Source: Eutreptiella sp. 'Long Island Sound 2002' (Eukaryota > Protista > Euglenida). From it: a stretch of DNA of 64,000 nucleotides. Below, piece after piece: positions 23,089 through 38,813 of the stretch. A program made the translations under genes and the position numbers. Position 1 is the first letter of the stretch; each line of letters opens with the position of its first letter. Below the pieces are notes generated by a model. It saw nothing but the letters and a program-made list of their open reading frames with translations, ran no database searches and was not told the origin of the DNA. The DNA lies in assembly GCA_964036045.1 (NCBI GenBank), contig OZ038378.1, positions 1,984,001-2,048,000 of the forward strand, given 5' to 3'.

Positions 23089-23359
23089 ATATACTATATG
23101 TATATGCATGCGGGGGAGGCAAAAAAACCGGATGTGGTGGAATTGTTTCAACGTATTTGGACGGATTTGATGACGACCACATTGTTTTTCTGGGATCTGG
23201 GACCGACATAAGCTCCAGATTAAAGAGGGCGCCGTCCCTCAGAATCTGATAGTATTATGTCGCGTCCCGTGCTGAACGGGAACCTTCATCAGATTCACGC
23301 CTACGAGAAACACTGCGGCGTCCAGGTTCCACACTCATTTGTCGCTCCCGTTCCTGTCG

Positions 23360-23505
23360 TGGCCGGGGTTGTTGTCGCTCATCGCGTGGCTCATCGCGTG
23401 GCCGGGGTTCCTGTCGCTCATCGCGTGGCCGGGGTTCCTATCGCTCATTGCGTGGCCGGGGTCCCTGTCGCTCTTTGCGTGGCCGGGGTTCTTGTCGCTG
23501 TGGTC
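23360..23505. repeat. 27-bp tandem repeat inside a small ORF of ambiguous strand
   Basis: About 5 copies of gtggccggggttcctgtcgctcatcgc. Covered by ORFs 23257-23601 (+) and 23335-23637 (-). Confidence 0.85.
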
Positions 23506-23616
23506 GAGGCTCATCCCATTCATCGCGTTGGGGGGCGCGACTACTCGATCGCCACTGACTCCCACAACGGTAACTCTTGGACATGGATGATGCCTGTATA
23601 AAGAAAAAAACAGATA

Positions 23617-24132
23617 ATGCAGGCTCGTGGTAATCATGTCATCAATCTACTGACAATTCTACTTCTCATCATTCTGCAAATTGCATTTTATGTGCTTGTT
23701 GCATCCAAACAGTTGCAGCAGAACGTCACTGAAAAAGCGCACATAGCAACCAATTTGAGAAAACATTTGCAACAAAACAGTGGCAATGCTAAACTTCATC
23801 ATGTGCTGGATGTCAAAATGGCATATTGGCACCAAAAGGTGTCAAAACAGGCACACGCGGACAGAGATGAATTAATGAAACACAATCGAGAACTCTTGAG
23901 AAAATGGATGCTACCTGTGGTTGGTGGACTCCTTTGTGTCAAAGGTGTCTACATCCTGTATGCCATTGTCCACTCACGCTCCAACGGATACCACGTGCTT
24001 GGTGGGCCCAAAAAATTTGGGCTGTGTCTGTTGTTGCTCAGTTATACCACTGAAATACTTTTCTTTGTGTTAGTTGTGAGACGTCACATATATATTGCTG
24101 ACTCTGAGCTGTTGTTGGCCACTATGAAATAA
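23617..24132 (+). CDS. Hypothetical 3-TM membrane protein, giant-virus-like
   Basis: Intact 171-aa ORF with an A-rich leader and three hydrophobic helices, ending YTTEILFFVLVVRRHIYIADSEL. Separated from the next ATG by 2 nt. Confidence 0.75.
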   Translation: MQARGNHVINLLTILLLIILQIAFYVLVASKQLQQNVTEKAHIATNLRKHLQQNSGNAKLHHVLDVKMAYWHQKVSKQAHADRDELMKHNRELLRKWMLPVVGGLLCVKGVYILYAIVHSRSNGYHVLGGPKKFGLCLLLLSYTTEILFFVLVVRRHIYIADSELLLATMK

Positions 24133-26190: not shown

Positions 26191-26293
26191 AGAAACAACA
26201 ACTTGTTGGGGGAACAGGAGGAGCATCTAAGGGTTGACCAAACGTTCCTTGGTCCCCACTGCATGACTGTAGAGTGGTCATTATAAAATAAAA

Positions 26294-26857
26294 ATGACGA
26301 TTGTTCGAATTTATGTTGCCAGCTTCAATGCTGCACATGTTGTGCAGACATTTATGAGGGAGATTTACGGCATTGATCTATCACAAAACCATATCCTAAC
26401 ACCCGATGTGAGCGACTTTTATCGGGACAAGGCAATGAGCATTCACAGTATCAGTGACTGGTATTATAGGAAGACAGGGAGGACACCACGCATTGTCTTC
26501 TTCGACGATGACAAAAATAACATCAGCGCTGTTGAAAATTTGAAAAAAAAGTCTGGACGGTCCCACCTGATTCAGGCAAAACATGTTCTGCACTGTGGCC
26601 TGACACCCGAATTTTTCCACAAACACCTTGCAGAAAGTCTGATATTTTTTCGAAATCAGGGGCACGAGGGTGACGTTATTTTGGTTTTTGACTTTGATTG
26701 CACACTGACTAATTGGCACGTTGCCAACTTGCAACAGATAGGGAGACGACGCACCAACAAACAGAGGAGGCGTGTTGTGGCAGAGCACAGTGCGATGGCA
26801 CAGATTCTCAAAGGGATTTTGGAACACACCCAAAAACAACATGATCTCAGGCGATAG
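26294..26857 (+). CDS. HAD-superfamily phosphatase-like protein with permuted motif order
   Basis: IYVASFN (motif II) comes first, IVFFDDDKNNI (motif IV) is central, and LVFDFDCTLT (motif I, DxDxT) is C-terminal. ATG follows ttataaaataaaa. Confidence 0.8.
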   Translation: MTIVRIYVASFNAAHVVQTFMREIYGIDLSQNHILTPDVSDFYRDKAMSIHSISDWYYRKTGRTPRIVFFDDDKNNISAVENLKKKSGRSHLIQAKHVLHCGLTPEFFHKHLAESLIFFRNQGHEGDVILVFDFDCTLTNWHVANLQQIGRRRTNKQRRRVVAEHSAMAQILKGILEHTQKQHDLRR

Positions 26858-27068
26858 TAATGGGGTGTTTCCTCCCAAACTGACACGCGCACTCACAATC
26901 CAGAATTCTTTTAATTGTGTCTTGCCCGCAGACTACACACTGCGGTTTGTCAACACGGGAATGGGAACATGCAAAATGAACTGTTACCCGCCACGTACAT
27001 GATGTGCACCGGGTGAGTCTTGACCGACCACTTCGATACATTGTTTTATCACAGATTTTACACTGCAT
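26847..27068 (-). CDS. C4HC3 (RING-variant/PHD-type) zinc-finger protein, 73 aa
   Basis: CKIC-x14-CTSC-x6-HFAC-x9-CVVC. Convergent 11-bp overlap with the HAD gene. Confidence 0.7.
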   Translation of the reverse strand: MQCKICDKTMYRSGRSRLTRCTSCTWRVTVHFACSHSRVDKPQCVVCGQDTIKRILDCECACQFGRKHPITIA

Positions 27069-27511
27069 GGTGAAACAGACCTGTTTGCACGTCAGTGGCA
27101 TTTTGGCCTTTTCTTTGTCACACACTTTGTTTTACCGTTGTTTCACAGACCACATCCTACAGCGAAAGCGCGAGAAACAAGACAGAGCCAATACCATTCA
27201 AGTGACCTGCAGTTGTCAGAGTCAATTCAGTGGGACGTGGACATGCGGACATGCGAAACATGCGAACATGACACGCTGAACTCAATAAGTGAAAGTCAAA
27301 AGGCATGTAAACACATAGAAGTCCAAACCATGCCCCGGTCAGTGTCGTTGCTGGCGAGGCTACAGAGGCTACAGAGGGAAAAAGCATGTCAATTACACCG
27401 GCAGCTCCTGCAATCCCATCAGCGGAATGTTGAAATGCTCTAGAGTCCAGCAAGAACCCAAGAACCTGAGTCTGACTTACCAAGAAGGTTGAAAAAGCAC
27501 ATATGCACGTA

Positions 27512-27516
<5 letters not shown>

Positions 27517-27577
<61 letters not shown>
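27517..27577. repeat. (TA)n microsatellite
   Basis: Pure TA run. Confidence 0.98.
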
Positions 27578-29025
<1,448 letters not shown>

Positions 29026-29045
29026 CCCTAACCTGCTCTCTGGAG

Positions 29046-35974: not shown

Positions 35975-38813
35975 TTATTGCCGAGTGGCGATCACAACTA
36001 TTGTCCACATACGCGGCGTCTCCAATCGGTCAAGGTACACAACCCCTGAACCGCCTTGCTCGACGTCCTGCGCAATGAGAAGGGCGGCCGGGGTCTGGGT
36101 GTGCTGCTGGCCCTCCCACCTTTCCCTCGGGAGCATCATGGCGTGGGGGGCCAGGCACTGTGCCACATCGGCAACCAGCGCGATCGTGTCGTCGCTCACC
36201 TCCGCCGTGTGGTCCGCGGCCACCAGGAAGTGATGCCATGGCCCGGGCTTGTCACCGCTTGCATACAAACCCTCCAGGGCGCCTCGCATCTCGGCCGGCG
36301 GTGGAGAGGCGTCTCCGCAATCCCGAAGCCAGGGAAGTGCACCCGGGAGATGCTGTCCCGCTCCCCCTGACCAGATGGTGGCTCGCAGGGTCGGCAGGTC
36401 ACGCCAGATAACCCGGGCGATTGGGTCTCGCCAGGGTTGAGGCCTTTGGGCCCCCCAGTGAAGGATGGCCACCACCACGTGTGTGGTCAGGTGCTCGCCG
36501 TGAGCTGCAACGCTACCCTCTCATCTGTTTTGACCACCGTGCCCCGCAGGGCCGTGAAGATGTGCCCCCCGAATCCTCGGACGGTCACCCACCCCCACAG
36601 GACCGCCACAGCTTCCCAGCTAGGATTGGGGCCGGACTTCTTGGGCAAGACCACCACTGGCGGGCACGGGCTATTGGCGGCCCACACGCGCCATTCCACC
36701 CCCACCACACGTTCGTGGACAGGGGGGCGGAAGGTCTTGTGCCACGCGTTGGGGAGCTCGCAGCGACGGAGCTGGACGGCGGTGGACGGCGGTCCACACG
36801 TCAGCTCCATCACCGCGCGTGAACAGGAGCCCCTCAAGGATGTCCCGCGCCACGGGATTGGGGATGCGGACGGAACGAACCTCCGTCCTCTGTCCTAGTT
36901 GGAGCCCCGGCCCATCCTCATCCTGCAGCAGATGGACCTCCGGGTCCATGACTGCAAGCCTGGCCGCCATCGTCGGAAGGTGCAGGGAGACAGTCCACGG
37001 CTGGGCGGCGACAGAGTCGCGCGGCAGGTCCGGGCAAACGGCCAAAGCACTACCATCCCTGGCCGAGCTCAGCGCCTTGTCCCACCATTGCATCCAGGCT
37101 ACGCGCGTCGTCGGCAGCGACCAGGACAGGTAGGTCACGACTGCCCGAGCCTGCCACCCGTGCGGGTCCATACCGGCAGGATGTGTGTGGCATGTGCACA
37201 CCCACCTCAGGGACGCCCCTTCGAGGGTGACCATGTCCCTCCACGGGACCACCGGGAACGGGGTGAGCAAGACCGCCATGCCACACGGCAGCGCCACTGC
37301 CCACACGGTCCTGCTCCCGTGAGCGACCGCGTACCCCACCGCCGGGGGCCCCCACCCTGCTCCTTCTCCACCACTTTACGCATTAGCGTCTCGTGGTGCT
37401 TGGAACGGTGAAGGCTTGGGGCCCCCAGGCGGGCGATGGCCTGGAGGATCAAGAGCAGATTCTGGGGTACTCCCTGCGGCACCGGTGGTTGAGGGTGTCC
37501 TAAGCGGCATGCATCCGCCCGCATGCACCACCCCTTGGCCCAGTGCCTGCAGGTTTCCAGCTCCCCCGTCTTGGGCCTAGCTCTGTCCGCCACCTCCGTC
37601 TCCCGGTGCTCCACCTCGTGCGCCTCCCTCGCCCCCACCATGTCGAATCCTTCACCCTCCTCATCAGCTTCCCCCACTTTGCTACGCTCCCGGCTTTGGT
37701 CGTCTTCTTCCATCGCTTCAGCAGTCGCCGGGCCGGCCGCCGCCATGATCGTCGCAAGGGCCGCCTCCACGTGGGCCTTGACGTCCACCTCATCGCCCTC
37801 GGACCGGCCCGGGTCCGGACCCCGTTCCTCTTGTCGCCCCTCCGTTGTGGGCCCCTCAGCATCATCTCCCGCGGTCCCACCCTCATGGCCCGCCGATGCG
37901 CCCGCCGCTCCGTCTCCTCCACCTCGACCGCGCATTGTTCGGGTCCTCGGTGGCCCGTGTCCGCTTCCTGGCGCGTGCCCACCACCACCAGCACCCTGGG
38001 GTCGCCACCGCGGTTCACGAGGCGGTAGCTGATGGAGGTTGGGACGAGAACCGCACCGTTAACGGCGAGTGACAGGTGGTTCGTACCGTCCTCCCCGAAC
38101 ATGGCCTCCATGCCCTCGGGGTGCATCGCCACCACGACGGCATGGGACCCCGGCGCCTCGGGCGTGAGGGGCCTGATGCCGTGCTCGAGGCGCCAGGAGT
38201 GAGCGCCGCTCCTCCACGGGGCCATGTACAGGCCGCCCCGACGCACATCCTCCAGCCCCGCCTTGTTGAGCTGGCGCCCTACCGATAGGCGCACCGATAG
38301 GAGGACGTGTTCTGGCGGCTCAGACGCCCGGACCTCACCTCGGTGGTGATCGAGGACCGCTGCGTCCCCCAGCTGGACACAGTCGACCCGGTCACCTCCC
38401 GGGGGCACGGCTTCCAGGCTCTTCTCCCGGGCGACCCTTCCTGGAGGCTAGAACTCGTAGCGCCCCATGGCGCCCACCAGCAACGTCGCCTCTCGCCGCC
38501 CATCGCTCATGAGGCGGTGCTGGTGGATATCCTCGGCCGCATGGAACCTGCAGTGCCGCTGCTCACAGCTCCGCAAGGGAGGGGGCGGCACCGCGGTGGT
38601 CATGGGCAGCAGCGGCACATGTGCCTGGTCCACGTCCATGCCGACGTAGACGTCGGGCTCGGCATCGTCCTCGTACATGACGGCCAGCGCCAATTCGCCG
38701 GGCCCGTACTCCACCTTCTCCTGCACGTCCTCCATAGCCACGGCCTGTGCCCCTTCCTCTTCCCCCTTAGCCGCTAGAGCCGGCGGCGACTCCGGCTGCA
38801 GGCAGAAGGGCAT
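35975..38813 (-). mobile_element. GC-rich, frameshifted long ORF with CCCH zinc finger, probable retroelement relic
   Basis: Overlapping ORFs 38448-38813, 37500-38408 (same frame across a TAG), 37207-37935, 36671-37339, 36487-36837 and 35975-36478. CRHWAKGWCMRADACRLGH is C-x7-C-x5-C-x3-H. The last stop lies inside AATAAA. No RT motif in this piece. Confidence 0.6.

Follow-up and report, generated by a model that had tools for sequence, protein, structure and literature searches.

A probable natural circular permutation of an MDP-1-like HAD domain encoded on a Eutreptiella contig

Introduction

HAD is among the largest of the phosphatase superfamilies, and its members are the textbook case of four catalytic motifs held in a fixed order, I to IV, on a conserved fold. 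Motif I, DxDx(T/V), lies at the end of the hydrophobic strand S1; motif II is a Ser or Thr at the end of strand S2; motif III is a Lys or Arg that precedes strand S4; and motif IV, DD or GDxxxD, is found at the end of S4. The motifs follow one another as I-II-III-IV along a chain whose first core strand is S1 and which folds into a three-layer Rossmannoid structure with the strand arrangement S3-S2-S1-S4-S5, has a squiggle and a flap past S1, and brings all four motifs into one site. These aspartate-nucleophile phosphohydrolases transfer phosphoryl groups with Mg2+ by way of an aspartyl-phosphate intermediate. Here we describe an open reading frame (ORF) whose product carries candidates for all four motifs in the order II-III-IV-I. 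It occupies positions 26294-26857 on the plus strand of a 64,000-nucleotide stretch of contig OZ038378.1 from Eutreptiella sp. 'Long Island Sound 2002' (this whole stretch is referred to as the window, and all coordinates without a locus label refer to it).

The described proteins closest to the ORF product are the MDP-1 phosphatases (PDB 2wm8, 1u7o/1u7p; PF12689, TIGR01681/TIGR01685, HAD-IIIC). The substrates reported for MDP-1, phosphotyrosine and sugar phosphates, are not transferable to the window protein. Both proteins are small and essentially cap-less, but MDP-1 has the canonical motif order and the window protein a permuted one. The alignable region of the two begins at the motif III Lys, takes in FFDD(E/D)xxNI and continues as far as the terminal helix; the strand with motif I, VFD(L/F)D(Y/C)TL, is in register between MDP-1 and the family to which the window protein belongs. 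Two further comparisons are also with proteins of canonical order. The HAD domain of Legionella Lem4 (6cgk, 6cdw) provided the sole HAD structures among our Foldseek matches in the PDB, which were non-significant, and Pfam DUF2608 gave a weak match around motif IV in three of the six members of the window family.

Circular permutations have also arisen naturally in alpha/beta enzymes of other folds, such as the classes of DNA methyltransferases. In those enzymes the catalytic motifs are likewise rotated on a conserved fold, presumably by way of duplication and truncation; the superfamilies concerned are different from HAD. No naturally circularly permuted HAD protein was described in the full-text literature that we searched, the coverage of which was incomplete, making this absence of evidence only.

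A rotated order of HAD motifs

The ORF consists of 187 codons and a stop, running from an ATG at 26294 to a TAG at 26855-26857. Taken together, the ORF listing, the homologues and profile-profile alignment (hhalign) point to a complete ORF encoding a circularly permuted MDP-1-like HAD domain. A preliminary description of this sequence had called attention to the strings IYVASFN (residues 6-12), FFDDDKNN (69-76), VFDFDCTLT (131-139) and SAMAQILKGILE (166-177). The ORF and the positions of these strings were reproduced exactly, and the motif residues within them turned out to be invariant columns in homologues that are only 28-30% identical. Read from the N terminus, the candidate motifs are II (S10), III (K46), IV (D71-D72) and I (D133-x-D135-x-T137).

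Relatives were sought by word-indexed and exhaustive searches over ~15 billion proteins. Three close paralogues (P0002-P0004) share 61-67% identity with the window protein, and two distant members (P0006 and P0007) share 28-30% identity and have the same motif order. A seventh copy, at L006:19814-20398 (minus strand) and ~10 kb from P0007, has the permuted layout and degenerate residues, so that the II-III-IV-I arrangement is common to seven loci on six contigs. All of the permuted relatives come from a single ENA long-read metagenome assembly (ERZ25074135), where they lie on contigs of 0.3 to 1.4 Mb with 39-71x coverage, the window's own contig there measuring 492 kb; run against IMG/VR and the metagenome contigs of JGI, the family alignment recovered no relatives. 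In P0002 and P0004 the gene calls extend the N terminus back to a GTG, an extension that is probably artefactual, and the 290-amino-acid gene called at L006:19814-20398 probably starts too far upstream. Across the range of 28-30% identity, the invariant columns are S10, N12, K46, D71, D72, N76, C101-G102, T104 and D133-F-D-C-T-L-T139. Because these columns coincide with the candidate HAD motifs II, III, IV and I, the motif strings are more than chance resemblances. As a side observation, contig ctg9078 holds a segmental duplication of ~14 kb that is 99.9% identical between its copies (L002/L003).

Searching with a profile made from the family's alignment also uncovered a relative with canonical motif order, P0008, a protein of 237 amino acids that passes the gathering score of Pfam Acid_PPase (39.5 bits versus 27; E. 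coli gmhB served as the positive control for the Pfam scan). Its own relatives, P0009-P0014, lie on transcript-like contigs of ~1 kb, and one member of the cluster is an MMETSP transcript. These Acid_PPase-type proteins, uncharacterised and from marine protists, are the nearest relatives that we know of. In the alignment of these seven proteins (A4), the order is I-II-III-IV: motif I reads LLVFDFDCTIARxHVW, motif II VAIATFGRKDVV, motif III GNKNTQL and motif IV IIFLDDDxNNV, followed by an HTPxG turn that matches the CG(L/M)T turn of the permuted family. The canonical and permuted proteins are alike in having VFDFDCT(I/L) with a His five residues past the Thr, (A/V)(T/S)F(G/N), the motif III Lys, DDDxNN(I/V) and the turn H(T/V)PxG or CG(L/M)T. 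They differ in that the A4 proteins begin with a low-complexity leader of ~40-80 residues and keep the canonical order, whereas the permuted proteins have no leader, start at S2 and end with S1 and helix alpha1; identity between the two groups is ~25%. Several of the N termini in P0008-P0011 begin with MGC(S/N/K), followed by the 40-80 residue low-complexity linker before motif I, and we take this MGC start to resemble a lipidation signal (N-myristoylation/palmitoylation). The gene for P0014 stands head-to-head with, and ~100 bp from, an intron-less gene for a 631-amino-acid sugar transporter (Sugar_tr; L009:296-2191 and 2294-2962), an arrangement that suggests a compact genome for that organism.

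When the window family was compared with A4 by hhalign in its native order, two separate alignments were obtained. Residues 5-115 aligned with canonical positions 129-231 (probability, 94.7%; E = 6e-8), and residues 125-145 aligned with canonical positions 73-93 (probability, 95.1%; E = 3e-8). These alignments are non-collinear, with a native score of 55. Thirty column-shuffled controls per half reached maxima of 15.6 and 19.7, compared to 51 and 55 for the real halves. We then rotated the stored family alignment and compared each rotated version with A4 in the same way. Rotation near residue 121 gave one collinear alignment of 152 columns, covering canonical positions 74-231, with a score of 94 and an E value of 2.8e-14; in a scan of cut points at steps of 12 residues, the score climbed to its maximum at 121 and dropped back to the native baseline of 55 elsewhere. 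Because two homologous segments are swapped relative to the canonical family and a single rotation restores their collinearity, a circular permutation is indicated. We consider it probable that ORF 26294-26857 encodes a naturally circularly permuted HAD domain of the MDP-1/Acid_PPase type.

A profile search with swapped halves was what the preliminary description had proposed, and the rise from 55 to 94 in a single collinear alignment bears it out. Its suggestion of a clean permutation also agrees with the genomic copies: seven of the seven loci are permuted, none has a normal or a tandem double-HAD layout, and no remnants were found in the flanks within ±10 kb. Sequence comparison demonstrates that the domain is homologous to a canonical HAD family, that its two segments are swapped, that rotation makes them collinear again, that seven loci agree in layout and that the window copy retains all the canonical catalytic residues.

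Curated domain models give a consistent picture for the family as a whole. Four of the six members match Acid_PPase, the best of the paralogues at 21.8 bits (E = 1.8e-4). In P0002 and P0004, this match extends from the motif III Lys to profile position 164-165 of 169, meaning that the canonical domain is nearly consumed before the DFDCTLT strand is reached. The HAD-IIIC, HAD-IA-v3, YihX glucose-1-phosphatase and MDP-1 models match the N-terminal two thirds weakly, and the C-terminal pieces searched alone in Pfam, which are too short for the purpose, gave nothing relevant. Against PDB sequences, the profile of the permuted family (A2) reached MDP-1 at an E value of 0.58 only. MDP-1 (2wm8, 1u7o) was the closest PDB sequence both for the canonical family (E = 1.1e-7) and for the combined profile (E = 1.5e-7), which matched it out of order. 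The window protein carries residues for all four HAD motifs while departing from the collinear order and scoring below the curated thresholds; it is an MDP-1-type HAD protein in the sense of a topological variant and not of an ordinary member.

Layout of the protein and its predicted fold

The features of the protein are given here from the N to the C terminus, all on the plus strand. The new N-terminal strand, residues 3-12 (IVRIYVASFN; 26300-26329), corresponds to canonical S2 with motif II, as judged from an AlphaFold2 (AF2) strand at 3-10, the hhalign alignments and the invariant S10 and N12. By hhalign, S10 falls opposite T134 of P0008, within the canonical VAVATFG, and supplies the Ser or Thr that characterizes motif II. 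A helix at residues 46-61 (26429-26476), supported by the invariant columns, hhalign and AF2, starts at the invariant K46, which aligns with K174 in the canonical GNKNTQL and supplies the Lys of motif III. Strand S4 and motif IV follow at residues 66-77 (RIVFFDDDKNNI; 26489-26524), a placement based on the sub-threshold Acid_PPase and HAD-IIIC matches, the invariant columns and the MDP-1 structures 2wm8 and 1u7o. The first two Asp residues, D71 and D72, never vary and presumably bind Mg2+; they align with canonical D196-D197 and with FFDDE of MDP-1. The third, D73, does vary (DDN in P0007).

Positions 26570-26653 encode S5 (residues 93-97), then a conserved turn, CG(L/M)T (101-104), and then the helix that comes last in canonical proteins (105-120). 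This part aligns with the C-terminal end of the canonical proteins and of the Acid_PPase profile, in agreement with AF2. The permutation junction is placed by the optimum of the rotation scan, with the cut before residue ~121, in a loop at residues ~121-127 (NQGHEGD; 26654-26674); these ~7 residues connect the old C-terminal helix with the old first strand. The relocated S1 with motif I occupies residues 128-139 (VILVFDFDCTLT; 26675-26710), as indicated by hhalign, an AF2 strand at 126-132 and the invariant DFDCTLT. Motif I, VILVFD133-F-D135-C-T137, is invariant in six members and in register with canonical motif I and with KLAVFDLDYTL of MDP-1. D133 is the presumed nucleophile, D135 the presumed general acid/base and T137 a presumed phosphate-binding residue.

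The new C-terminal segment, residues 140-187 (26711-26854), comprises a region equivalent to the flap and a long helix at 154-186, and was delimited from the un-permuted and fragment alignments and from AF2, where its predicted local distance difference test score (pLDDT) is 51-74. The helix matches alpha1 of the canonical proteins, the helix ahead of S2 there, in an alignment of low confidence and with low model confidence, and the new termini fall between helix alpha1 and strand S2. This is where the preliminary description had put the C-terminal helix, as the one that ordinarily precedes the motif II strand, and the alignment places it there as well, with low confidence in that stretch. The same description held that every catalytic Asp is kept, and D71, D72, D133 and D135 are indeed all present in the window copy.

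The AF2 model built with the six family members (A2) had a mean pLDDT of 70.5 and a predicted TM-score (pTM) of 0.69; adding the canonical halves as fragment rows (A6) gave 78.5 and 0.75, respectively. Both models place strands at residues 3-10, 66-71, 93-97 and 126-132 and helices at 14-25, 46-61, 74-87, 105-121 and 154-186. The strands coincide with the motif II, IV and I segments, and this predicted beta-alpha order is suggestive of a rotated HAD core.

Weighing other explanations

The observations gathered in this section include those that weigh against reading the ORF as a functional permuted HAD domain. By itself the window protein scores 15 bits on Acid_PPase (cutoff, 27) and 15.6 on HAD-IIIC (cutoff, 35.75), and in scans of Pfam, NCBIfam and, with phmmer, the PDB it passed no family threshold, its motif IV matches being sub-threshold only. 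Every curated model misses the protein because annotation pipelines assume the motif order I-IV. Foldseek searches with two models against the PDB and one against BFVD, using a sequential aligner that is handicapped by permutation, returned no match at an E value of 1e-3 or lower. The best matches (E ~0.02) were generic alpha/beta proteins (SRP GTPase, IDH and PTA domains); matches to HAD entries, namely Lem4 and Cedratvirus fragments, were confined to E values of 0.05-0.35, the Lem4 match having a probability of at most 0.82 over 100 columns with a TM-score of 0.32. Because the alignment is sequential, we treat this outcome as uninformative rather than negative. The family is also confined to one metagenome assembly among the ~15 billion proteins, and no transcripts of it were seen. 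Separately, the direct scans of the window protein produced antibody light-chain matches on 'PRxxIFDD', which we rejected as spurious.

The alternative that survives best accepts the permutation and holds that the window copy, or perhaps the whole clade, is a decaying or noncatalytic relic drifting in repeat-rich DNA. Selection within the family is uneven. Omega, the ratio of nonsynonymous to synonymous substitution rates, is 0.59 between the window copy and L002 (95% bootstrap interval, 0.39-0.95) and 0.69 between the window copy and L001 (0.43-1.23), the latter interval including 1, and for the recent L002/L004 pair omega exceeds 1 on the basis of few changes. P0005, which is truncated, duplicates the family's first ~62 residues, a 5' fragment whose locus, L002:5716-5902 (minus strand), which is the same as L005:10001-10378, lies inverted ~4 kb from the full copy P0002. 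The seventh copy at L006:19814-20398 reads GFDCVMT for DFDCTLT and DGD for DDD; with its nucleophile lost, it is likely an inactive paralogue. Decay would also fit the rearranged or inverted flanks of recent duplicates, the Ty3/gypsy elements and microsatellites nearby, the nonhomologous, low-complexity C-terminal tails of the copies (rich in Pro/Arg/Gln repeats in the close paralogues) and the failure to find transcripts or relatives in the other datasets searched.

What speaks against a relic is an uninterrupted window ORF with all of its catalytic residues in place, together with significant constraint elsewhere in the family: omega is 0.24 for L006-L007 (0.13-0.38) and 0.47 for L001-L002 (0.30-0.67). 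Constraint is strongest over the first 45 residues (omega, 0.40-0.48), and the start codon and leader are conserved. Moreover, in comparisons of the window with the paralogous loci (blastn and tblastx), similarity was confined to 26286 to ~26821, that is, to the ORF, and recent duplicates share the ORF and ~39 nucleotides upstream, beyond which the flanks are inverted and rearranged; similarity that ends at the ORF borders is expected if only the coding part was preserved. The family is or was under purifying selection, clearly so for some of its members but only weakly in the case of the window copy. On balance we regard a relic as unlikely but as a rival to be taken seriously.

A second alternative is that the ORF is a gene-model artefact, namely an exon or fragment of a larger gene, spliced or miscalled, of canonical or tandem double-HAD layout. 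The gene models do come from a prokaryotic gene caller run on eukaryotic DNA, in which introns are possible. However, blastn and tblastx, covering ±10 kb at the paralogous loci, disclosed conservation nowhere but in the ORF, and tblastn with the canonical proteins found the two halves only inside each ORF, swapped. Over the same ±10 kb, there was no motif I upstream and there were no motifs II-IV downstream. Eight codons 5' of the ATG at 26294 there is an in-frame stop, and the close paralogues use the same ATG. Seven loci on six contigs agree, and all of them cannot be one misassembly. We therefore hold an artefact to be very improbable.

Finally, the idea that an unrelated alpha/beta protein happens to contain DxDxT-like and DDD strings, for which one could cite the scores below Pfam and NCBIfam thresholds and the SRP GTPase, IDH and PTA domains at the top of the Foldseek matches, is effectively refuted by the hhalign, rotation and shuffle results and has next to no probability in our estimate, since each half matches the canonical family independently (E = 6e-8 and 3e-8, with shuffles at 19.7 or below), the rotated alignment reaches 2.8e-14, the combined profile finds the MDP-1 structures at 1.5e-7 and the motif residues are the invariant columns.

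A possible enzyme and its origin

Returning to the circularly permuted domain, we picture the gene as a stand-alone, single-exon gene of an intron-poor microbial eukaryote. Its chain would run from S2 and motif II (S10) through K46, motif IV (D71, D72), S5 and the last helix, and then through the ~7-residue loop into S1 and motif I, the flap and alpha1. Such a chain would probably adopt the usual Rossmannoid sheet in an MDP-1-like fold, with the four motifs meeting in one site. The product would then be a Mg2+-dependent phosphomonoesterase that works by way of an aspartyl-phosphate on D133, with D135 as general acid/base, with S10, T137 and K46 holding the phosphoryl group and with D71 and D72 holding Mg2+. 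The window copy keeps all of these residues and may be catalytically active. More speculatively, the flap and alpha1 might form a free C-terminal tail, and substrate gating may differ from that of the canonical enzymes.

As for its origin, a canonical protist gene probably took the classical route of tandem duplication or fusion, followed by loss of both outer parts. The permuted gene would then have multiplied, as a duplicate the size of the ORF, within repeat-rich DNA that was being rearranged. Our tentative proposal, which has a fair amount in its favor and which we would not put more strongly, is that the window protein is a catalytically active, natural circularly permuted HAD phosphatase of recent MDP-1-like protist origin that has expanded as ORF-sized duplicates.

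If this is true, the HAD Rossmannoid core tolerates a chain in which the nucleophile strand S1 comes last, and the flap and alpha1, as a free C-terminal tail, could gate or retune access of substrate. A natural permutant would be a template for engineering HAD enzymes in split or permuted form. A further gain would be a dated case of permutation by duplication in which canonical and permuted families can both be compared, and the protein flags a class of enzymes overlooked by searches that depend on domain order. These implications are tempered by the fact that a single uncultured eukaryote is so far the only source of the family and that its activity is still unproven.

Leader, neighboring ORFs and genomic surroundings

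The A-rich sequence TTATAAAATAAAA precedes the ATG at 26294. The leader itself, ATTATAAAATAAAA (26280-26293, plus strand), adjoins the start codon, and the DNA similarity to the paralogues begins within it, at 26286. The window ORF and its close paralogues have AATAAAA before the same ATG, and the position of this ATG directly 5' of the motif II strand is conserved among them. An AT-rich leader belonging to the ATG had been part of the preliminary description, and it is shared in this form with the close paralogues. The overlap that it reported between the stop codon and a convergent gene is real in extent, at 11 nucleotides with a minus-strand ORF of 92 amino acids at 26847-27125; its status as a gene did not hold up, as this ORF is a mechanical call that has no Pfam match and is not conserved beside the paralogous loci (blastn and tblastx). 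Being unverified, it is not counted here as evidence against truncation. A different convergent ORF lies downstream of the distant members, at L006:10535-11302 and L007:10499-10978 (both minus strand), where tblastx shows it to be conserved between the two loci at up to 77% identity. No Pfam family matches this ORF, the loci of the window clade lack it, and it may represent a partner gene linked to the distant subfamily.

The surroundings of the family are eukaryotic, rich in repeats and retroelements, and neither viral nor bacterial, and nothing in them pointed to a human contig. The giant-virus setting and homologues envisaged at the outset were not borne out: the context is eukaryotic instead, and IMG/VR holds no relatives. 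Ty3/gypsy elements with chromodomains occur at the related loci, as do protein kinases and domains of the ARID, zf-MYND and legume-lectin-like kinds. The Ty3/gypsy retroelements (RVT_1, RT_RNaseH, integrase and chromodomain) lie 4-8 kb from family members, at L001:1710-6657 and L005:17194-20378. Protein kinase ORFs are found 1-4 kb downstream of three members (L002:13694-14692, L006:12907-14034 and L007:11591-12031). We rejected these kinase ORFs as a conserved neighborhood, there being no tblastx similarity among them; their position is probably coincidence in a kinase-rich genome.

Within the window, long ORFs are sparse. Scans of the window for tRNA genes and Rfam families found none, and no dinoflagellate spliced-leader relics were found in the window or the related loci. 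Two pure (TA)n microsatellites occur at 27517-27577 (30 copies) and 28769-29025 (128 copies). Between them, at 28261-28652, lies a tandem repeat with a 162-bp unit (2.4 copies, 85% match), which gives rise to long spurious ORFs at 28012-29031 (plus strand) and 28065-28709 (minus strand). Upstream of the permuted gene, a 27-bp tandem repeat (23389-23499; 4.1 copies, 91% match) lies within an ORF at 23257-23601, and the ORF at 23617-24132 has a weak CLN3-like match that is below threshold (E = 0.0034). Further downstream, the GC content rises to 67% at 36001-38000, compared to ~49% around it, in a region with overlapping minus-strand ORFs at 36671-38408.

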